A stretch of DNA of 64,000 nt, from positions 62,001-126,000 of the IMG/VR virus record IMGVR_UViG_3300050120_000152; one strand, given 5' to 3'. A model generated the notes under the pieces. The model ran no database searches, was not told the origin of the DNA, and saw nothing but the letters and a program-made list of their open reading frames with translations. How positions within the stretch are numbered: the first letter of the stretch is position 1; each line of letters opens with the position of its first letter. A program made the position numbers and the translations under genes. Shown here in pieces: positions 5,237 to 63,572 of the stretch.

Positions 5237-5527
5237 AATATAATTAAGTACATAGCCAATATTGTTACTTAAATAGAAGTTTATTAACTCAAAATCCTGT
5301 TTGTCGCCATCCGAATCTTGATCGCCATCGGCGACAAAGATTGATTCTATTTTATATTTTTTAGTTTCTTTGTCGATGAACAAATCTACCATGTACTCAA
5401 TCTTATTAGATTCATCCTGAAGCGTGAAGGTTCCATGGAGTACCTTCCCTTCATTTTTGTATAGCGTGCTGCTTAATATTTCAAAGTCATCTTTATATAA
5501 AGATTCAATAATTCGTTCGATTCGCAT
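5219..5527 (-). CDS. Hypothetical acidic protein (start MRIERIIES)
   Basis: Internal ATG of ORF 5219..5605; AATAAATA late-like promoter upstream. Confidence 0.5.
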   Translation of the reverse strand: MRIERIIESLYKDDFEILSSTLYKNEGKVLHGTFTLQDESNKIEYMVDLFIDKETKKYKIESIFVADGDQDSDGDKQDFELINFYLSNNIGYVLNYILENGS

Positions 5528-5639
5528 ATGGAAAACCTGTGTAATGTTATTTATTGATTTGTATACATAGTTACTGCGAACAAAATAATTAAAAGACCCA
5601 TCCACATTCCATAAATAGAAGGTAATTTATGGAATTTAA

Positions 5640-6302
5640 ATGCAATATAGAATTATTTATGATCAACTAATTGATCATGCAAAAGCTACCAATAATGATA
5701 GTGGGCCTTATGAAAAACATCATATTATACCAAAAAGTTTAGGTGGCAGTAATTTAAAAAATAATATAGTAAAATTAACTCCAAGGCAACATTTTGTGGC
5801 CCATCGGCTATTAACAAAATTTTTAATAGGTGCAGATAAACACAAAATGATATTTGCTGTTAAGCGAATGGCAACATCAAATAAGAGGAAATTATATAAT
5901 ATAAATTCTAGAACTTATGAATGGCTGAGAATTCAACATAATATAGCAGCATCTATTGTTATGAAAGGTAGAAAACCATCAGATGATACTATACGTAAAC
6001 AATCTATTGCACAAAGAAAAAGATATGCATTAACACCTACCCATTGGAAAGATAGACAACATGACCCAAATAGTATAGAATTAATTAGGGAAGCTAATAT
6101 AGGTAAAAACAATCACCAATATGGAAAACCAAGAACTACTGAAGAAAGACTAAAAATTAGTTTAACTATGAAAGGTCGTAAAAAATCCAAAGAAACCATA
6201 GAAAAATTTAAAAATAGAAAAGATTCGGAAGAGACTAAGCGTAAAAAAAGTGATGCAGCAAAACTTAGATGGACTAAACATAAAAATGAAATCATGGGAT
6301 AA
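5640..6302 (+). mobile_element. HNH homing endonuclease with NUMOD3 DNA-binding repeats
   Basis: EKHHIIPKSLGGSN...LTPRQHFVAH plus basic repeats (SEETKRKKS, HQYGKPRTTEERLKIS); overlaps the dCMP deaminase start. Confidence 0.88.
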
Positions 6303-15534: not shown

Positions 15535-16722
15535 ATGAAAATTTTTAAGGTAGGTGGAAGCATTCGTGATTTCTTTCTAAAAAAGACTCCACACGATCAT
15601 GATTATGTAGTCGTGGGTGCAACACCTTCTGAAATGGAATCTATGGGCTATAAACAAGTCGGTAAGGACTTCCCGGTCTACTTGCATCCTGATACTGGCG
15701 AAGAGTACGCGTTGGCTCGTACAGAGCGTAAAACAGGCTTGAAGCATACTGATTTTGATACAGTGTTTGATACTTCGGTAACCATTGAAACTGACCTTGC
15801 CAGACGTGATTTAACGATAAATTCTATTGCGCAAGATTTGGAAACTGGTGAATACATCGATCCATTCAATGGCATTCAAGATATTGAAAATAAAGTGCTG
15901 CGTCATACCACGGAAGCCTTCAAGGAAGACCCATTGCGTGTATTGCGTTTGGGACGTTTCTGTGCAAAATTTCCAGATTTTGAAGTGGCCGATGATACAG
16001 ATACAATGGTAAATCATATGATTGCCCGTGGTGAATTGGAGCATTTGTCCAAGGATCGTGTGTGGGAAGAAACTAAGAAAGCAGTGTTGTCAAAAGAACC
16101 GTTTAAATATTTTCTATTCTTACATCATGTGGAAGCATTACAATATGCTGTCATCGGTGGAAATATGATTACGGCTGAATTTGCTGAAGCGTTTAAGCGG
16201 ATTACCGAGTCTACTGAAAAAATGCCAGATGATGAAAAACTGTTGTGTCGTATGGCAGTCGTTTATTACCATTTGGGTACTTTATATAAATTGCAGTATC
16301 AATCTAACAAAGCTGCTACAGCAGAATTGAATACATGGAAAATTCCAACAGAAATTGCAGAATTTATTCAATTGGTGAATACTAAAGCATATGCGCTGAC
16401 GCATACTATTTTTAATTATAAGAATTTAGTTGAAATTATGGATGATATTGGAGTACGTAATAGAATTCAGAAGAATGACAGTTTCTTACAGAATTTGGGT
16501 TTAGTGTGTAACGCAATTTATCCAACAAAAGATATGTCTGCTACATATGACCCTGAATGGAATATTAAACATTTTATTGAACATGTACCATGCTATTTCG
16601 ATACCAAGGAAGCATTGGCCGAATGGATGGATGTAAATAAGCATGCTACAGGTAAAGAAATCAATGACAGATTGAAATTGATTAGAATACAAAATATGTT
16701 TTTAAATAGAGCTACACTATGA
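15535..16722 (+). CDS. cca: tRNA nucleotidyltransferase (CCA-adding enzyme, class II)
   Basis: VGGSIRD, DHDYVVVGA, VGKDFPV, EYALARTERK, DLARRDLTINSIA, EDPLRVLR. Confidence 0.95.
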   Translation: MKIFKVGGSIRDFFLKKTPHDHDYVVVGATPSEMESMGYKQVGKDFPVYLHPDTGEEYALARTERKTGLKHTDFDTVFDTSVTIETDLARRDLTINSIAQDLETGEYIDPFNGIQDIENKVLRHTTEAFKEDPLRVLRLGRFCAKFPDFEVADDTDTMVNHMIARGELEHLSKDRVWEETKKAVLSKEPFKYFLFLHHVEALQYAVIGGNMITAEFAEAFKRITESTEKMPDDEKLLCRMAVVYYHLGTLYKLQYQSNKAATAELNTWKIPTEIAEFIQLVNTKAYALTHTIFNYKNLVEIMDDIGVRNRIQKNDSFLQNLGLVCNAIYPTKDMSATYDPEWNIKHFIEHVPCYFDTKEALAEWMDVNKHATGKEINDRLKLIRIQNMFLNRATL

Positions 16723-23125: not shown

Positions 23126-25027
23126 ATGACCATTCATTTCTACACGGAATTTTTTATGTCTGACATTGATGCCATCGTTGCCCAACTTGAAGTGTACGAT
23201 ATCGCCTATGATGATGGTGATTCACTCGTACCTGATGCACAATACGATGCTATGAAACGTGATGCATTCAAGCGATTCCCAACTCACCCATATTTTATGA
23301 CCGTAGGCGCTACCGTTCGTGGTGGTAAGGTTAAGCTTCCTTATACCATGGGGTCACTTGACCAAAAATACGAGGGTGAAATCGAAGATTGGGTTAAAAA
23401 GTATAGTCTGTATAATGAAGAAATTTGTATTAGTCATAAACTTGATGGTGCAAGTGGCATGGAACGTTATAATGGTGGAACATTTCAGATATCTTATAGT
23501 CGTGGTAATGGTGTGCTTGGTGCAGATAGTAGCCGCCATGTAAAGAATTTGCCAAGTAATCCCCAAACAATTTCTAAATTAGGTCATCTAACTGTTCGCG
23601 GTGAATTAATTGTTCGCAATGATACGTTCGAAAATCGTTATGCGGATGATTATAAGACCGCTCGTGCTATGGCATCTGGTTGCATGAATGCATCTAATAC
23701 GTCACAGAATAAATTGAACGATATTGATTTTATTATGTATAGTGTTGTTGACTGTGATCCAGAATTCGAAACGGTTTCACAATCAGCCTCTTTGGATATG
23801 CTTGAATTATTAGGATTTAAAGTTGTTCCTTATATTATTGTTAGGGGATCGGAATTGAATGATGATTTCCTTACTAAAACGTTGGCTAAAGCACGCGCAG
23901 ATTCGCCATATGAATTAGATGGTATCGTGTTGACTATCAACAAAAAGTCTGCACAAAAGAATTTATCGAATTCTTCCAGTTTGAATCCTGAACATTCTGT
24001 AAAATATAAAGTTTTGGATGCTGCTGCATTGATTGAAACGACAGTAGTTAAAGTCCATTATGAAATTAGTAAGAATGGATATCAGAAGCCTCGCGTGGAG
24101 ATTAACCCTGTTCAGCTATTCGGCACAACGGTAACGTTCGCCACGGGCTTTAATGGCCGTTACATTGTGGATAATAACATTGGATCGGGAACCAAAATCA
24201 AAATTACCAAAAGTGGATCAGTTATTCCATATATTGTAGAAATTGTTAAATCTACCGTCGCCGATGTTCCGTCTGGCGATTGGGATTGGAATGATAACAA
24301 GGTAGAAATGGTAGTTCGTGATCCACAGAATCATCCTGAAGTCATTTTTAAACAAGTATTGGACTTCTTTAATACACTGGAAGTTGATCTACTAAAGGAA
24401 GCATCTATCGAAAAGGTTATTAGCTATCTGAAGCTTAATAATTCTTCCTATGAAACCATTCTGTTCACTATGCTTAATTTGCTAGAAATGGAATGGGAGA
24501 AGATCATTGGCTCTAATGGTGCAAAAATCTTTGCCAGCTTGGAACGTCGATTGTCGTCCTTGACTCTTGCTAAATATTTGGGATCACTTAAATATTTTGG
24601 TACGGGGTTTGGAGTTCGCAAGGCTAAACTATTGTTGAAAAATCTTACGGATGAAAATGATGTATGGAAATTATCTGTCAATAGGATTGTGGATTTTGAA
24701 GGTTTCGATGTAAAGACTGCAACAAAGTTTATTGATGGCTTATATGATGCTAAGGCATTTGCTGACAAAATGAATTTGAAGTTTGTGCAGGAAAAGAAAA
24801 CTAATGAATTAGAACATTTGAATGTTGTATTCACTGGTTTTCGTGATAAAGAATTTCAAGAAAAACTTGAGAAATCAGGTGCCAAAGTTGGATCATCAGT
24901 GTCTAAAAAGACAACTCATGTGCTAACAGCAGAACCAAATTCTAGTTCAGGTAAGGCTGTCAAGGCTCGTGAGTTAGGTATTGATACTCTTTCGCTAGAT
25001 GAATTTAAAGAAAAATTTAATTTATGA
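23126..25027 (+). CDS. ligA: NAD+-dependent DNA ligase (likely start 23156)
   Basis: DAQYD, KLDG, SRGNG, RGE, DGIV, KSGSVIP, C-terminal BRCT (VFTG...SVSKKT). Confidence 0.93.
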   Translation: MTIHFYTEFFMSDIDAIVAQLEVYDIAYDDGDSLVPDAQYDAMKRDAFKRFPTHPYFMTVGATVRGGKVKLPYTMGSLDQKYEGEIEDWVKKYSLYNEEICISHKLDGASGMERYNGGTFQISYSRGNGVLGADSSRHVKNLPSNPQTISKLGHLTVRGELIVRNDTFENRYADDYKTARAMASGCMNASNTSQNKLNDIDFIMYSVVDCDPEFETVSQSASLDMLELLGFKVVPYIIVRGSELNDDFLTKTLAKARADSPYELDGIVLTINKKSAQKNLSNSSSLNPEHSVKYKVLDAAALIETTVVKVHYEISKNGYQKPRVEINPVQLFGTTVTFATGFNGRYIVDNNIGSGTKIKITKSGSVIPYIVEIVKSTVADVPSGDWDWNDNKVEMVVRDPQNHPEVIFKQVLDFFNTLEVDLLKEASIEKVISYLKLNNSSYETILFTMLNLLEMEWEKIIGSNGAKIFASLERRLSSLTLAKYLGSLKYFGTGFGVRKAKLLLKNLTDENDVWKLSVNRIVDFEGFDVKTATKFIDGLYDAKAFADKMNLKFVQEKKTNELEHLNVVFTGFRDKEFQEKLEKSGAKVGSSVSKKTTHVLTAEPNSSSGKAVKARELGIDTLSLDEFKEKFNL

Positions 25028-27757: not shown

Positions 27758-28150
27758 TCCAAAGTAATTTGGATTATGATTGTAAAGATATCGTAAGGTA
27801 TCTGAGATTGTGAGTAATAAAGGGCCGCGACACGAGGGTTCGACTCCCTCCATCTCCACCACATATGTTCTTTACTGTTGCAACAGTAACGCTAGACGCC
27901 TATCAACTCCCTTCGAAAGGAGCCATGTGTAGGATGAGACAAGCCCAATGATGGCGCGGAAGAACATAGCTGATGGGGATGCAATGGCTTCGACCGGGGT
28001 TAGAATAGACAAACAGACAATCCGTTTAGAATGGTACGTTATACCTTAAAAAACTATAAATGCTTCTAACGATGCGATTTATTCAATGGAATACAGCTTA
28101 GCTGCTTGAAATTGATGGGGTTTAATCCACCTTATTACCCAACAAGATTA
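27758..28150 (+). ncRNA. ssrA: Circularly permuted (two-piece) tmRNA; outer ends approximate
   Basis: Acceptor piece ends GAGGGTTCGACTCCCTC-CATCTCC-ACCA (27861); coding piece starts GGGGATG (27975) giving G3:U70; tag ORF 28062-28109 encodes ASNDAIYSMEYSLAA*. Confidence 0.92.
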
Positions 28151-28151
28151 C

Positions 28152-28175
28152 AAAAAGGAGCTTCGGCTCCTTTTT
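28152..28175 (+). terminator. Intrinsic terminator of the tmRNA
   Basis: aaaaaggagc-ttcg-gctccttttt. Confidence 0.9.
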
Positions 28176-28255
28176 GTTTTATAGTGCATTGCAAAATATT
28201 CAAATGATTTTCATCCACCATAAATACTTAGACATTTATTTTGGAGGATACTAAA

Positions 28256-42498: not shown

Positions 42499-44733
42499 AT
42501 GGGAGTACTTCAACTATTACTGGATCATTTAATGATTATTCCAAATTCTAATCCCTTCGTGATTCAGTCTCAAAATCTTGTTAGTCATGATTTTGGTGCT
42601 AAGTTGGATGGCAAATTCTTTAAAATGATTACCGAATCGCAGTATGAGAACAAAATTGGTTCTCCTGTGCGAGAATTATCGTGTAATGCCTTGGATTCAC
42701 ATAATTCTGTTGGGAAAGGCAATATTCCATTTGAAATTCATTTACCATCGGTTTATGAACCGTGGTTCAGTGTGCGTGACTTTGGTTCAGGCATGTCTGA
42801 TGAATTTGTACAAACCACTTATACTACCTTTGGTGCCAGTACCAAAGATATTGCCAATGATGCTATTGGCGGGTTTGGGTTAGGATCGAAAACGCCGCTG
42901 GCATATACAGATAGCTTCTCAGTCTGTTCTATTTTTAACGGTGTGAAATCACATTACAGCGTCATTTATGGTGATACTGGTATTCCCGCATTGACAGCGT
43001 TTGACAGCGAACCCACTGATGACCCCAATGGCGTAGAAATTAAGTTTTCTGTTAAGTCAGACGATTATCGTAGTTTTTCTAATGAAGTAATCAAACAGTT
43101 GATGTTCTTCAAGGTTAAACCAACATTGCTTAACAATACGTTTAATGCTCAATTTCATGAAATCGAATATAAGGAAAATTTTGGTAATTTTAAGATTACC
43201 AATAGCGTTTCGGGAATGTGGATCGTTCAGGGTGAAGTTGGCTATCGTCTCGATAAAGCATTATTTGCGGAAAAAATTAAGGATAAAGACCAACTTGAAT
43301 TTTTCAATCTGTATAATAATGCGGTAATGTTTTTTGATATTGGAGATATTGAGGTTACTATCAGTCGTGAAGGTGTTTCTTATAGCCCGCATACAGTAGA
43401 ACATCTTGAGAAATTTGTAAGCATTCATGCACCCATCATCTATGGAAATATCAAAACACATATTGAAAATATGTCTTGTGATTGGGAGCGGTTATGCTAT
43501 CTGAACGAAGATTATACTAATCGTCGCTTTGCCGCATTAGCTGGCATGAAATTTGGTAAAGATGGCAATACTGGCGATATGAAGCTTTCTATTCATGGTA
43601 GTGGCAGTACAACTTATGGTATTACACTTACTTCAAATTGGCGTGTTAATAACATTAAAATGTGGAACATTTGTTCATTTGACAATACTAAGAAGACACG
43701 CGCGTATTTTAATGGGAATGAGTTTATTATCAATCCATCAAAAAATATTCGTATTTTTATCCGTGATGTAGCAAAATCTACTATTGGCAAAATGAAACAT
43801 TATATCAGTTCAAATTCTGAATATAATGTTTATATGATTGAACATCCTGATGGTGCTGCTAAAGTAAATGCAGAATTTATTGGAAATATTAAAAATTATT
43901 TTGGCGGAGTCGAAATTCAGCTGGCATCAAGTTTTCCAGAGCTTGATCGTTCAGCCCGTATTGCATCAAAGAATAGTCCAGTTGTGGTCTATAAAAATGA
44001 TGCTACTAAAAATGTAATATTTAACACCGAATCATTCTATCATTGGGATCGAATTTATGATGAAGAAGAAATTGAAGGTGGCTATTTCTTAATTTATGAT
44101 TCGTTTCCACGAATTAATGCAGCTATTAATGATCTTGAAATGATCAAAAAAGTTGTGTATGCGGGATTGTTTGATAAACCCATTTATATTATTAAACGTG
44201 AAAAATCAGCTTTGCTACGGGATAATCCAAATTTTAGTTGTCCTATCGTTAAGGCTCGTGAAATTATTGAAGAAAATGAAAAGAAGATTTTGAAATCTGA
44301 AGTGCAAATTCAACGTTATAAATTCGCACGGGCTGTTAACCAATATATTAATGGTGTTATCGGTAGTCCTAATGCGTCTCTTATGATAATCCCGGAGGAT
44401 GTTAATCGGTTGCCTACTAATAGTGTCCCAGCACGTATTAAGAAGATTCACAAAGTCAGTGAACGATACGTAGCACGTATCAATAAAATGATAGAAGAGC
44501 AGACACAACCCTTATTGAAAGCATTATTTGAAGAAAGAATCAAAGCATCATTTGACGATCAACAGAGTGTATTATCAAAAATTTATAATCATAATGATAC
44601 TGAAATGTTTTATGAGAAGTATCCCATGATTAAAGAATTGTACGGATCATATAACCGTTACGGCGAAAGCATAAAAATTCGTTCCAAAAATATGGTTGAT
44701 TACATTTTGACAGTTGACAAGGCAACTGCTTAA
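42499..44733 (+). CDS. rIIA: rIIA-like protein (GHKL ATPase N-terminus); likely start 42532
   Basis: YENKIGSPVRELSCNALDSH, RDFGSGM, GASTK, GGFGLGSK, SREG; directly followed by rIIB. Confidence 0.9.
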   Translation: MGVLQLLLDHLMIIPNSNPFVIQSQNLVSHDFGAKLDGKFFKMITESQYENKIGSPVRELSCNALDSHNSVGKGNIPFEIHLPSVYEPWFSVRDFGSGMSDEFVQTTYTTFGASTKDIANDAIGGFGLGSKTPLAYTDSFSVCSIFNGVKSHYSVIYGDTGIPALTAFDSEPTDDPNGVEIKFSVKSDDYRSFSNEVIKQLMFFKVKPTLLNNTFNAQFHEIEYKENFGNFKITNSVSGMWIVQGEVGYRLDKALFAEKIKDKDQLEFFNLYNNAVMFFDIGDIEVTISREGVSYSPHTVEHLEKFVSIHAPIIYGNIKTHIENMSCDWERLCYLNEDYTNRRFAALAGMKFGKDGNTGDMKLSIHGSGSTTYGITLTSNWRVNNIKMWNICSFDNTKKTRAYFNGNEFIINPSKNIRIFIRDVAKSTIGKMKHYISSNSEYNVYMIEHPDGAAKVNAEFIGNIKNYFGGVEIQLASSFPELDRSARIASKNSPVVVYKNDATKNVIFNTESFYHWDRIYDEEEIEGGYFLIYDSFPRINAAINDLEMIKKVVYAGLFDKPIYIIKREKSALLRDNPNFSCPIVKAREIIEENEKKILKSEVQIQRYKFARAVNQYINGVIGSPNASLMIIPEDVNRLPTNSVPARIKKIHKVSERYVARINKMIEEQTQPLLKALFEERIKASFDDQQSVLSKIYNHNDTEMFYEKYPMIKELYGSYNRYGESIKIRSKNMVDYILTVDKATA

Positions 44734-49591: not shown

Positions 49592-49669
49592 GGGCTATTG
49601 AAGGGAATTGGTCTACCTACCATCCTTAGAAGTTGGTGTTTCTCGGTTCGAATCCGAGGTAGCCCACCA
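49592..49669 (+). tRNA. tRNA-Leu(TAG), short variable loop
   Basis: GGGCTAT/GTAGCCC acceptor, loop CTTAGAA, TTCGAAT T-loop, encoded CCA. Confidence 0.85.
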
Positions 49670-49675
49670 AATTAT

Positions 49676-49758
49676 GCCGATGTGGGGGAACGTATACCCA
49701 GCACGCTAAGGACGTGCCGCCGCAAGGCATGCAGGTTCAAGTCCTGTCATCGGTACCA
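49676..49758 (+). tRNA. tRNA-Leu(AAG)
   Basis: Stem GCACG/CGTGC with loop CTAAGGA; long variable arm GCC-GCAA-GGC; A73-CCA. Confidence 0.85.
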
Positions 49759-49766
49759 AATTTAAA

Positions 49767-49822
49767 TCTTAGGGACTGATGATTGTAAGACCCAAGTGAA
49801 ACTAGCGTTCTAGTAACAATCA
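49767..49822 (+). ncRNA. Pseudoknotted, ribozyme-like spacer between tRNAs
   Basis: cttaggg/cccaag crosses tgattgt/acaatca; hairpin actag/ctagt. Confidence 0.35.
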
Positions 49823-49826
49823 ATAT

Positions 49827-49906
49827 ACCGCTGTTGGGCAATGGAGGCCCGCCAGAATACGAATCTGGTATAACACATGTTGGTTCGAATCCAATCAGCG
49901 GTGCCA
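49827..49906 (+). tRNA. tRNA-Arg(ACG)
   Basis: ACCGCTG/CAGCGGT acceptor; CCAGA-ATACGAA-TCTGG; CCA. Confidence 0.85.
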
Positions 49907-52140: not shown

Positions 52141-52761
52141 ATGCTTTCCAACATTGAAAAAACCCGTATTGCACTCTATCATTGGATGCTTGGAAAAGGC
52201 TTTTTCATTGCTTCCGAAGCCATGGCTTATGCTGAAAACACACATGTAGGTTTCCGTAAGGATGGTGTCACGCCAGCTTTTGCTCACCAGATTTGGATTG
52301 CTAATCGTATCCGTACATTCAATCTTCCCGATGATGTAATGGAACTCTGCCTCATTTTGGCGTTCTTACATGATACTGCTGAAGATTATGATGTAGGTTT
52401 TGAAGAATTTAATGCAAAGTATGGTGCTGTTGTTGCTGATGGTGTTCGTCGTTTGACGAAAAAGCATCGCGGGATGGTTATCCCAAAAGAAACTTATTTC
52501 AGTGATTTGGCACTCATGGCGGCTGCAGCTATCGTAAAAGGTGTAGATCGTTTGCATAACCTTTCTACGATGATTGGAGTGTTCAATCCTGCGAAACAGA
52601 TGGATTATATTGCAGAAACTATGTTGTTCCATTTGCCTATGCTTAAGAAAGCTCGAAAAAGCTTCCCTATGTATTGGCAGGCTTTTGAAAGCATCAAACA
52701 GGCTATCAATGATAAAATGGAAATGGTCAATATGATTCTTAAACTTGAGGCAAAATCATGA
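52141..52761 (+). CDS. HD-domain (p)ppGpp hydrolase (small alarmone hydrolase-like)
   Basis: H.G.RKDG.TP...H, LHDTAED, LTK, VKGVDRLHNL, YIAET. Confidence 0.85.
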   Translation: MLSNIEKTRIALYHWMLGKGFFIASEAMAYAENTHVGFRKDGVTPAFAHQIWIANRIRTFNLPDDVMELCLILAFLHDTAEDYDVGFEEFNAKYGAVVADGVRRLTKKHRGMVIPKETYFSDLALMAAAAIVKGVDRLHNLSTMIGVFNPAKQMDYIAETMLFHLPMLKKARKSFPMYWQAFESIKQAINDKMEMVNMILKLEAKS

Positions 52762-54751: not shown

Positions 54752-54994
54752 ATGACAGACTCAACCGTAGAAAAGAAGCAACGTGGGGCAAAGCGCAATC
54801 CCAATAGCGCAATCAGCAAAACATATGAGATTATCAAAAATCTCCCGGTCGCTGAACGTACTCGCTCTAATGTGTTAAGCCTTATTGGGGTTGGCACAAC
54901 CATCAATTTGCAAGAAAAGGTTGCTAGTGTATATTATTACAACACAATGAAGAAGATTCGTAATGAAGCTGCAACGTCAACTGTAACCGCATAA
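54752..54994 (+). CDS. Small basic protein directly upstream of the rRNA-like RNA
   Basis: AGGA RBS before MTDSTVEKKQRGAKR; early promoter at about 54667. Confidence 0.6.
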   Translation: MTDSTVEKKQRGAKRNPNSAISKTYEIIKNLPVAERTRSNVLSLIGVGTTINLQEKVASVYYYNTMKKIRNEAATSTVTA

Positions 54995-55012
54995 AAGTCT
55001 TGAGAGGGCGGA

Positions 55013-55267
55013 TGAAGGTCGTAGGCTTAGAAGCAGCCATCATAAGAGTGAGACAAAGGCCAAATGCTATCATGTAGATAAGTCGAAGGGTATCGTTAAC
55101 TTATCGAAATTTCAAAAACTGCCAATATCCATAATACGCTATTATGGTTTAGAGCAATGGGATGGCTTCCCTGAGAAAAAGACGCATTGGACACCACTTG
55201 GTAAAGTAATGATGCACCCCAGAAATGGTAAGGCAGATTTTCTCTTTAGCGTAATAGCACACCTTCA
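55013..55267 (+). ncRNA. Structured RNA mimicking the 23S rRNA uL11-binding domain (H43-H44) with a large insertion
   Basis: GTAGGCTTAGAAGCAGCCATC (55021-55041) and AGCGTAATAGCACAC (55248-55262), closed by TGAAGG/CCTTCA. Confidence 0.8.
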
Positions 55268-55331
55268 ACAATCTTATGATTAAATAAATCTATTGACAAA
55301 TGATATAAATAGTATATCATATGATTATTAT

Positions 55332-55403
55332 GGCCTATTCGGCGAATCCGAACTGAAGTCTTCGAAACTTTATGGAAGTGTTTGACTCACTTATGGGCCT
55401 CCA
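55332..55403 (+). tRNA. tRNA-Arg(TCG), atypical D-arm and T-loop
   Basis: GGCCTAT/ATGGGCC acceptor; AAGT-CTTCGAA-ACTT; T-loop TTTGACT; CCA. Confidence 0.7.
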
Positions 55404-55411
55404 AATTATAT

Positions 55412-55492
55412 GGCCTCGTAACGAGCAAGGTTTCTACCCTTGACAATCGTAATTGGATGTAAATGGGGGTTCGAATCCCTCCGGGGCCACCA
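55412..55492 (+). tRNA. D-armless tRNA-like RNA, anticodon TCT (Arg)
   Basis: GGCCTCG/CGGGGCC acceptor; 7-nt connector instead of a D-arm; CAAGG-TTTCTAC-CCTTG; long extra arm; canonical T-arm; CCA. Confidence 0.65.
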
Positions 55493-57831: not shown

Positions 57832-57981
57832 GGGACGTTAGCTCAATTGGTTAGAGCGATGACCTCTCCGGGAGAGTTTTAAGACTCTCCAATCTAACAG
57901 ATTTTTATAGTCTGTTACTTTGGGTAGTTTTCCCTAAAGATAAGTCATGGGTTGCTGGTTCAAGTCCAGCACGTCCCACCA
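57832..57981 (+). tRNA. tRNA gene interrupted by a 73-nt structured insert in the anticodon loop (Ile-GAT, CAT or Lys-CTT depending on the junction)
   Basis: Perfect acceptor, D and T arms; anticodon stem ATGAC/GTCAT encloses 80 nt. Confidence 0.85.
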
Positions 57982-61077: not shown

Positions 61078-63572
61078 TTATCATGGATAAACTCTTACAT
61101 ACTGAAACTTTCAATTTGGCCCCCCATGAAAATGGGGGAGAAAGTTTGTTACTTCATATTGAATATTTTGATAATGGTGATCATAATTATCACGGCATTT
61201 ACATGAATCAAACGCTTTCACTGCAATCTTACGGTAATAGCGCATCATTTAATTTATGTGGAGCCGCTTTATCACCAGAAATTTTACGTAAATTAGCTGA
61301 TACTATTGAACGTGGACATGCGCTATCTGCATTAAACTTTTTTGAAAAGGTGGAGAAATAATCATGGGTTTTCATAGAACTAACAGCATTGGCTATTTTG
61401 TAATTGTTAAGCCAACTACAACAGTGGTTGAGCGTATCACGTACAAATGTCCTCAATGCTCAAGAAAGTCTTCTCTCCTAGAGACTGACAAATTTTGCTC
61501 TTATCATGGTGTAGAGATTATCAAAACTGTAAAGCATGACACCATAAAATTAGATGATCCTTGTCAGATGGTTCAGGATAACGAAGCATTATATGAAAAA
61601 TATGATGAAGATTTTCTATGGTCGCCTGAATATGGCCCTGAAGGCATTGGTATTTTTAATATAAATGTGACAGAGAAGTCACGTCATTTTGACGAAGATA
61701 ATTATTGCACCATTACATCAGATAATCTTGTACCACCAGAAATGTTACCTGATGCTGAAGTTAGAATCAATCAGTTTCTTAATGATTTCCGCAATGTTTA
61801 TGGTGAAGATTCTATTGAATTAAAATATGGGTTTTATAATTATGATAGTTAAGGTGTTTTCATGAGTGTAGAAATTCCCTATTTTGTTAATGATTTTTTC
61901 AAAGAGCAGATCAGAGAAAAGGGTGTGCTTATTGTTGAAGTTGATGTATTTGACCAAAATGATGAAACTAAATTTCTTTATCGACATGGGTTAACTTTTG
62001 GCATTGATATGCATTTTCATGGTGCCAATTCTTATACATTAAGTATCAATGAATATCTCAAACGATTACTCACTTACACGATTAAGCCTATTAAGATTTA
62101 TGTAAATAAAGTGGCTTTAAACACTATTGAACCTAAAGCGTTACCACCAGTCATCACACCTATTGAAATTGATTTGACCAATGTGGTAGAATCAGATGAT
62201 GATACACCACCATCAACAACCGAAGGATAATTATGAATATTGCAGGAAAGATCGCTGGGATTGTTACATATATTTTACTATTACTTACTGTCATCTATGT
62301 TGATTTGACCGCTAATGTAGACCTTTTTGGTCATCTTGTATTTGCCCTCGCTATCGCATTCATTGTGGTTTGTGGTTTGGGCGTTTATAAAGGTGGCGAT
62401 GCATCATCTGACCCAGAATAGATCAAACAGGTCAAATAATTATGTTATTATGTAGTAACAAACCACTTAACAAATTAGTGAACAATTTTTTCAATGATAT
62501 TGCAAATATTCTTCATCATGTACGAGATAGGGTATCTGATAATAAAGTGTTGAAAGAAGTTGTCTCTCTAAGAGAAACTGTAGTTGCTACTCAATTAAAA
62601 TTTGATCCTGATGAAGATTATTCAGAACTTATTGAAATTATAAAATTTTTGGATATTCTTGAATATGTGGTGTTATATACCAAAGAAACGTGGGAATCTT
62701 GATATGTCATATTGTCGATGTGGTACTAATAGTGATATGTATGCTTATTGTAGTGGTGATACATATGAATTAATTTTTGCTGGTGCAAAGTTAAAAGAAG
62801 GCTCACGTAGACGTTGGAAATATCTAAGTGATATGATGGCTAATAATAATGGTAATCCTCTTAAACAAAGCTCATTATGGGCCGAAATGAAAGAATTGTG
62901 GGAACCTATCCCACTCAAATTAGATAAAGCGTCTTATATATTTGATACTCCACGAGAACTTTACAACAAAATGTTGGAAGGTCAAACGGCAGGTTACAAA
63001 GTGCCAAAATATGTTCTAAATCACGTTTTGGCTGATGCCAAATCTTATGAAAAAACAATTAAAGGAAAAATATGACTGTCGAACATTTTATTCAAGCTAT
63101 TATCGCTATTTCAAGTAGTTATAATTTTTGGCCTTATTGGGTTCCTATCATTATTTGTCTTGTTGGTTATATCTTCAAGACCGTTAAAGAATATAACGAA
63201 GATGTGAAGAATCGTGCTGATTATCTCAGTCAACCAGATTCTGCGCAAATTCAAAGGCGATATATACCAGAATTAGTAGTGGGTCATTTAGTTGGCCGAC
63301 TATTGGTATCATTCATTCCAGTCGTAAATTTTTGTATTGCCTTATTCGTATTTCTTCCAACGCTTGCTCGTGATATCATTGACGTTTGCAGTAATTGGTT
63401 AGATATTCCGCTTGTACCAAAGAAAGAGAAAGCTACTGCAGTAGAAATAAACTCATACTAAGATTCATATAAGATATATTGTAAATAATCATTTGCCTGT
63501 CACGGTTAATAGACAAGATGAACACACTAGTAATGGTATAATACTCCCATCATAACAACAGGAGAATCCATT

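Follow-up and report, generated by a model that had tools for sequence, protein, structure and literature searches.

A large family of phage RNAs resembling the GTPase-associated centre of 23S rRNA, with a putative role as decoys for ribosomal protein uL11

The window examined here, a stretch of 64,000 nucleotides (positions 62,001 to 126,000 of the virus record IMGVR_UViG_3300050120_000152), is part of a 340-kb IMG/VR contig and contains a free-standing copy of helices H43 and H44 of 23S rRNA, with a closing stem and an insertion of about 200 nucleotides (55010-55271, plus strand). In rRNA, these helices belong to the GTPase-associated centre (GAC), a unit of 60 nucleotides that folds autonomously and whose tertiary fold is required for binding of ribosomal protein uL11 (PMC6239185). 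Recognition by uL11 involves the U1060-A1088 pair as well as the minor groove in the 1067 stem (PMC2175356).

A covariance model made solely from other members of the family described below, with the window sequence left out, has a single match in the whole window. The features of the element are as follows, with rRNA positions in E. coli numbering:

55010 to 55271, plus strand: whole GAC-like RNA gene, covariance-model match of 59 bits (E = 1.5e-14)
55014 to 55018, plus strand: 5' strand of the closing stem, GAAGG, equivalent to the top of H42, pairing with 55262-55266
55019 to 55043, plus strand: H43-like hairpin (rRNA 1057-1081), consisting of UCGUA, GGCUUAGAAGCAGCC and AUCAU, with the loop GGCUUAGAAGCAGCC as in rRNA
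55044 to 55049, plus strand: shortened junction AA, followed by GAGU (1087-1090) at 55046-55049, in which A1088 is 55047
55050 to 55247, plus strand: inserted domain of 198 nucleotides, in which GAGA (55050-55053) pairs with UCUC (55241-55244), ending in a UUU linker (55245-55247)
55060 to 55190, plus strand: long-range helix of 55060-55067 with 55184-55190, predicted by RNAalifold, around hairpins at 55077-55105, 55129-55147 and 55159-55171
55213 to 55235, plus strand: conserved insert module whose outer pairs covary, with ACC/UAAG as an invariant internal loop and a 3-bp hairpin capped by GAAA
55248 to 55261, plus strand: H44-like hairpin, consisting of A, GC, GUAAUA, GC and ACA, with the loop GUAAUA
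55262 to 55266, plus strand: 3' strand of the closing stem, CCUUC, pairing with 55014-55018

The segment 55024-55043 is an exact 20-mer of 23S rRNA (chance expectation 0.01 per window with three mismatches tolerated), and in E. coli it falls within annotated 23S rRNA, around positions 1055-1082. The initial annotation of this DNA had proposed a stand-alone RNA that mimics the uL11-binding H43-H44 region, and the 20-mer, the H44 loop and the 59-bit model match bear this out. Both of the rRNA loop sequences that it described are retained, on the A1067 side (55029, with U1060 at 55022) and on the A1095 side (55253), and the sequence AGCGUAAUAGCACAC at 55248-55262 fits the family 3' consensus, (G/A)GCGUARNAGCACAC after a UUU linker. 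The closing stem was also correctly recognised; its 5 bp are shifted in register by one relative to the rest of the family, in which the stem covaries. No other rRNA sequence was found in the window with the Rfam LSU models (at the gathering score or E <= 10) or with the family covariance model, in agreement with the earlier statement that none surrounds the element. An LSU rRNA gene was considered for this locus and rejected: there is no contiguous 2.9-kb rRNA, and the flanks consist of an ORF and a promoter-like site. The extra sequence, which had been described as an expanded junction, instead interrupts H44 between 1090 and 1091, and the junction itself is 3 nt shorter than in rRNA. Among the hairpins listed at first, gataagt/acttatc, ccataata/tattatgg and ggga/tccc covary in relatives, but ctgcc/ggcag clashes with the module at 55213-55235. 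The single-sequence fold energy of the RNA was no better than that of shuffled sequences (z = -0.28) and is uninformative.

The window copy is not a typical one. Its junction (1082-1086) has two nucleotides (AA) instead of the five found in rRNA and in the family, a truncation unique to this copy among the 168 or more in the family. H43 has two mismatches at its foot, 1057:1081 (U·U) and 1058:1080 (C·A); the H43 loop, U1060·U1078 and G1059-C1079 are present. There is also an A in place of the G before GCGUAAUAGC, and the score of 59 bits compares with 80-124 bits for typical full-length members. Since the insert and the closing stem are intact, the window copy is probably still under selection; because of the shortened junction, the mismatched foot of H43 and the A for G before GCGUAAUAGC, uL11 binding can be predicted with less confidence for it than for typical members.

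The family was defined by three independent pattern scans of viral or genome contigs, the counts from which are lower bounds, and comprises at least 168 distinct copies after removal of duplicates, in viral contigs, MAGs and cultured phages. A 19-mer scan of viral contigs gave 45 loci, only one of which (L036) is real rRNA, and a 15-mer scan of viral contigs and an independent scan with a family-specific 3' motif each gave at least 120 matches. When genome contigs of bacteria and archaea were scanned with this 3' motif, at least 27 true copies were identified among the 120 matches listed, the rest being chance matches; among these listed matches, the true copies are chiefly in MAG contigs from many phyla, often in dense tRNA arrays. 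Cultured carriers include the Pseudomonas phages pf16, UNO-G1W1, Milchi and Astolliot, Aeromonas phage 4_4572, Cronobacter phage GAP32, Pectobacterium phage CBB, Xanthomonas phages XacN1 and XbC2, Serratia phage BF, several Erwinia jumbo phages, and Paenibacillus phage Pd_22F. In all of these cultured phages the region of the GAC-like RNA is either without annotation or labelled as a hypothetical protein. A CDS of the latter kind overlies the RNA in Pseudomonas phage Milchi (PQ464597.1, 79150-79186) and in Erwinia phage Kaldavass (PQ464595.1, 96380-96644); these two CDS calls are probably mis-annotations.

Megablast of the element against phages gave no match, and the phage relatives were detected by sensitive blastn only. 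Rfam 15 contains no family for the element, as judged from scans at the gathering score and at E <= 10 of the window and ten typical loci; the sole Rfam matches were local ones to the LSU rRNA model, with 20.6 bits in one member (L029) and 68.4 bits in another that lacks the insert (L119). Such an RNA is not described in the papers covered by a full-text literature search, beyond which further papers may exist. By Rfam 15 and the literature searched, the phage GAC-like RNA is rated as a categorically new class of RNA, the function of which is putative.

Read from 5' to 3', the family consensus starts with one strand of a closing stem (5-13 bp), followed by H43, a junction of 5 nt, GAGU, the 4-bp stem that opens the insert, the insert itself, the UUU linker, (G/A)GCGUARNAGCACAC and the other strand of the closing stem. 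Covariation backs every rRNA-like helix, including the junction pair 1082:1086. At 1057:1081, 120 copies have AU and 17 have CG; at 1058:1080 there are 63 copies with UA, 43 with GC, 29 with AU and 8 with CG. Junctions of UUAAA (66 copies), CUAAG (41) and AUAAU (16) make 1082:1086 UA, CG or AU. Family-wide, covariation extends over 8 bp of the closing stem, and all four Watson-Crick pair types are found both in this stem and in the basal stem of the insert. For the 5' halves (101 distinct sequences), 98% of cells are paired and the covariation score is 0.44, versus 0.09 for shuffled alignments (0 of 500 shuffles as high); this score collapses once the partners are slid. A model-based alignment of the whole core (106 matches) has 91.3% pairing and 560 double-change cells, versus 182 when shuffled (again 0 of 500). 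The same helices were recovered independently by RNAalifold from 24 short-insert members. At the base of H44, G1087:C1102 and U1090:A1101 can be paired in one model, and the extra G with C1102 in the other (from RNAalifold), with A1101 bulged; because all of the residues concerned are invariant, both models are equally compatible with the data.

The non-canonical features of rRNA are also kept: U1060·U1078 (UU in 128 of 154 copies), G or A at 1056 opposite A1103, a variable 1061, and GAGU with A1088. U1060 and A1088, which lie outside all of the search patterns, are invariant in 101 of 101 sequences. For the loops, conservation in either part was judged on copies chosen through the other part, positions 1062-1076 being scored on copies found with the 3' motif and the H44 side on copies found with the 5' 15-mer. 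On the H43 side, the triple-forming G1071 (137/140) and C1072 (135/140) are about 97% conserved, and A1067 (120/140, 86%, with G in 15 copies), G1068 (111/140) and A1070 (118/140, 84%) are relaxed. On the H44 side, G1093 and A1098 are conserved in 101 of 101 copies, U1094 in 100 and A1095 in 97 (96%), and 1096 and 1097 vary freely. In ribosomes, 1061, 1067 and 1069 make no contribution to the GAC fold, A1070 and A1095 do not vary, though neither makes tertiary contacts, and A1095 touches cofactors (PMC6239185). Because of the family-wide covariation and the invariant U1060-A1088 pair contacted by uL11, a GAC-like fold of the family is very likely, and the pattern of constraint is better explained by selection for this fold and uL11 binding than by selection for contacts with translation factors.

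The insertion point is fixed in all insert-bearing members between 1090 and 1091, inside H44, and the insert is joined through the covarying 4-bp stem. In all of these members an A occupies 1101, where it can pair with U1090, G1091 is preceded by an additional purine, and the UUU linker is present. The inserts range from 31 to 368 nt (median 141) and are of several types, each conserved within sub-lineages; the type seen in the window, which ends in the module at 55213-55235, is found in 37 of the at least 168 members. Five contigs (L003, L078, L145, L213 and L327) have the rest of the window-type insert in common, and RNAalifold of the window together with these five relatives gave the long-range helix listed above; the hairpin stems within it covary, and the loops GAAGGGYAUC and YCGCUA are conserved. 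A reading of part of the insert as a sarcin-ricin loop (AGUA...GAGAGG in pf16) was rejected because the sub-family does not conserve this stretch, and none of the known motifs could be assigned to the insert.

Several variants depart from the consensus. About a dozen members have a second hairpin inserted after 1077. The insert-less L119 (4331-4434, minus strand) is a stand-alone copy of the entire stalk-base rRNA domain, H42-H44, that matches positions 1071-1173 of the LSU rRNA model (68 bits) and has the rRNA-type GCUCAC; its surroundings are AT-rich non-rRNA flanks, within a viral region of 15 kb in the genome of an isolate. Another variant, L062, also lacks the insert, and L076 has rRNA-like H42 flanks too. 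The H42 extension that binds uL10 is absent from family members save L076 and L119. Two tandem, diverged GAC-like RNAs with a tRNA-Pro between them (L104, 5124-5363 and about 5441-5700) are embedded in an array of about 18 tRNAs on one phage contig, and L166 (14199-14347, minus strand) has a second H44-like hairpin within its insert (GGGUUAAUAGCUCAC, the rRNA-type version).

The genomic context of the family was examined for associated genes. In 64 of 100 copies examined there are tRNA genes within 3 kb, all 411 of them on the strand of the element; the remaining 36 copies have none within that distance. A tRNA lies within 300 nt of 54 copies; distances of 0-15 nt to the closing stem are common, as is normal from one tRNA to the next, and in pf16 the element occupies the gap from tRNA-Asn to tRNA-Pro. 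There is no conserved protein neighbour: in all-against-all clustering of 2133 neighbouring ORFs, no protein family exceeded 13 of the 168 loci, and TerD, a metallophosphoesterase, a DNA methylase and unknowns made up the largest clusters. Ribosomal protein genes were absent from the neighbouring window ORFs scanned against Pfam, and none recurs near other copies. The relevant features of the window are as follows:

169 to 1593: NAMPT
15535 to 16722: nucleotidyltransferase with the head domain of tRNA CCA-adding enzymes and poly(A) polymerases (Pfam PolyA_pol)
23126 to 25027: NAD-dependent DNA ligase
42499 to 44733: rIIA-like protein, closest to that of Xanthomonas jumbo phage XacN1 (28.5% identity)
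52141 to 52761, plus strand: ORF of 206 aa with an HD_4 domain (RelA/SpoT-type hydrolase; 26.2 bits versus a Pfam cut-off of 27.2), 2.3 kb upstream of the element, given for context only
54752 to 54994: small ORF preceding the element
55293 to 55320, plus strand: promoter-like site, TTGACA-16 nt-TATCAT, between the RNA and the next tRNA, by consensus match only
55396 to 55492, plus strand: tRNA-Arg(UCU), about 125 nt downstream of the element

The tRNAs that the initial annotation had placed downstream are thus present on the same strand, with more at 57.7 kb, all of them on the plus strand. The (p)ppGpp hydrolase that it had placed about 2.3 kb upstream corresponds to the ORF at 52141-52761, which on its sub-threshold domain match probably encodes a small alarmone hydrolase. 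Such hydrolases are not linked to the RNA in general: an HD_4-like ORF lies nearby in only two other loci (L128 and L065) of the 168.

The window contains other unusual RNA genes. A permuted two-piece tmRNA gene (27806-28109; 27769-28200 by ARAGORN) matches Rfam tmRNA_permuted with 88.9 bits and has a predicted tag peptide ending in LAA; therefore, the phage has its own trans-translation RNA. A tRNA at 57832-57978 (54.7 bits), not called by ARAGORN, is intact from the acceptor to the T arm and has a 77-nt insertion in its anticodon loop, without which the loop would read CUCAUAA, with anticodon CAU; a group I intron was rejected as the identity of this insertion, 77 nt being far too short. The tRNAs at 49592-49906 and 55396-55492 are unusual: they are long (78-97 nt), their variable regions are large or their D arms weak, and their Rfam scores are low (36.8-47.3 bits). 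The NAMPT, PolyA_pol nucleotidyltransferase, ligase and rIIA-like genes are auxiliary genes typical of large virulent phages.

The existence of the family, its rRNA-like secondary structure, the conservation of nucleotides of the GAC fold, the fixed insertion site and the location in tRNA arrays are established. We propose, with a probability of roughly 0.5, that this large and hitherto undescribed family of phage noncoding RNAs consists of copies of the GAC that are processed together with tRNAs into stable RNAs and bind host uL11 as decoys. The GAC-like RNA would be transcribed together with the phage tRNAs, and tRNA-processing nucleases would release it as a stable RNA protected by its closing stem. 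It would then take on a tertiary fold of the ribosomal GAC type and bind the host ribosomal protein uL11, so acting as a soluble decoy of the stalk base. A host partner is implied, because no protein neighbour is conserved. Ribosomes without uL11 fail to activate RelA. More speculatively, sequestration of uL11 might weaken uL11-dependent processes during infection, above all RelA activation and the stringent response. The lineage-specific insert probably either stabilises the fold or provides a second binding function.

Some observations point away from a uL11 decoy. The insertion begins 2-3 nt from A1088 and might either occlude uL11 or replace it, and genes of alarmone metabolism are not generally associated with the element. 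Another ligand may select for the H44 loop, since G1093, U1094, A1095 and A1098 are all nearly invariant and of these only A1095 is listed for ribosomes, as touching cofactors and not as making a tertiary contact (PMC6239185). A broader reading can be put forward tentatively, as somewhat short of an even bet: phages of many bacterial phyla might encode a trans-acting replica of the GAC, matured together with their tRNAs, as a stalk-base decoy that disarms the uL11/RelA stringent response or absorbs effectors directed at the GAC, with the inserts serving as effector modules.

Among the alternatives to a uL11 decoy, the RNA could instead be a trap for agents that attack the GAC, such as toxins of the host or of a competitor that modify or cut H43/H44, or antibiotics of the thiopeptide type, so that ribosomes are spared. 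The bacterial toxin Tre23 ADP-ribosylates 23S rRNA within H44, at nucleotides 1095-1098 (PMC8661411). In the phage RNA, conservation of the H44 loop nucleotides G1093, U1094, A1095 and A1098 is 96-100%. The RNA is located among phage tRNAs, which often serve as counter-defence against nucleases that target translation. However, positions 1096 and 1097 fall within the mapped target stretch of Tre23 and yet are not constrained, a stoichiometric decoy would be weak against a catalytic toxin, and A1067, which is critical for binding of thiostrepton, is replaced in 14% of copies. An anti-phage system aimed at the GAC was not found in the literature searched, and we know of none. This explanation is considered unlikely.

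The RNA might alternatively be a soluble platform that exposes its A1067/A1095 face to GTPases of translation, to RelA or to the tRNA elbow, with uL11 being optional, and that changes the availability of these factors rather than depleting uL11. The loops that contact factors are largely kept (A1067 in 86% and A1095 in 96% of copies), the RNA would be co-expressed with tRNAs, and L119 and L076 include H42, a further part of the stalk base. However, nearly all members lack the uL10 site, and A1067 and A1070 are under less constraint than in ribosomes. A factor platform is considered improbable.

An RNA acting only in cis, as a structural or processing element in the transcripts of tRNA arrays, would account for the strict placement on the strand of the array, often directly adjoining tRNAs, but not for the 36 of 100 copies without a tRNA within 3 kb, and a processing signal has no need for the exact nucleotides of the GAC fold or for its non-canonical pairs. 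The combined covariation and conservation contradict a mere processing signal, and we regard this explanation as very improbable. Least probable of all is a non-functional captured fragment of rRNA, host contamination, or a pair of rRNA exons split by an intron, as the high identity to rRNA and the known group I introns at LSU sites near 1065-1094 might suggest: this reading is effectively refuted by the covariation and is further opposed by the at least 168 diverged copies having compensatory changes, surroundings without other rRNA, would-be exons totalling only about 60 nt that are closed by a covarying stem of non-rRNA sequence, a G before G1091, an A1101 and a UUU linker unlike every rRNA examined, and inserts that are as short as 31 nt and, in the window and typical loci, have no match to an Rfam intron.

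The preferred reading, a trans-acting uL11 decoy, can be compared with several known systems. The 23S rRNA GAC itself (top of H42, H43 and H44; E. coli nucleotides 1051-1108), the domain of uL11 and thiostrepton binding, has the same three-helix layout, a nearly identical H43 loop, a similar H44 loop and, in common with the phage RNA, U1060·U1078, G1056·A1103, the 1082:1086 pair, A1088, G1071 and C1072. The phage RNA differs in being a separate small gene with an unrelated, covarying closing stem, in the additional domain of 31-368 nt at 1090/1091 and, in some copies, the second insert after 1077, in the A1101 that can pair with U1090, the extra G and the UUU linker, and in the lesser constraint on 1067, 1068 and 1070. 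The leaders of ribosomal protein operons (the L10 leader and the L1, L20 and S15 sites) are likewise extra-ribosomal RNAs that imitate the binding site of a ribosomal protein. They are, however, cis-regulatory parts of mRNAs of cellular operons with a loose resemblance to rRNA, whereas the phage RNA is encoded in trans, is nearly identical to rRNA and has no adjoining ribosomal protein gene; no Rfam match to such a leader (L10_leader and others) was found in the window or the typical loci.

GOLLD and ROOL RNAs are also structured, often phage-borne and adjacent to tRNAs, with unknown function, and a kinship with them had been suggested for the window element. This suggestion has to be dropped: neither the window nor the ten typical loci has an Rfam match to either at E <= 10, there is no similarity of sequence or structure, and the phage GAC-like RNA is much smaller and has a recognisable core. 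RNAs C and D of phage T4 are small, stable non-tRNA RNAs encoded in the tRNA cluster and processed together with the tRNAs, and their function is still unknown. Their setting is similar to that of the GAC-like RNA; no T4 record was among the blastn matches to the element, so that no similarity in sequence was detected.

The family would explain recurrent unannotated gaps in the tRNA arrays of phages, including cultured phages of Pseudomonas, Cronobacter, Pectobacterium, Xanthomonas, Serratia, Erwinia, Aeromonas and Paenibacillus, and a family model would correct the hypothetical protein calls in Milchi and Kaldavass. It also represents a natural mutagenesis of the GAC outside the ribosome, in which constraints imposed by the fold and by uL11 can be separated from those imposed by factor binding. 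Since culturable pairs of phage and host exist, the uL11-decoy hypothesis is directly testable. If the broader reading given above is true, this would be, as far as the literature searched shows, the first case of a virus copying a domain of rRNA as a regulatory RNA, and if ligands of the GAC such as uL11 are bound, mimicry of a functional domain of rRNA would be a new route by which viruses interfere with the control of translation.
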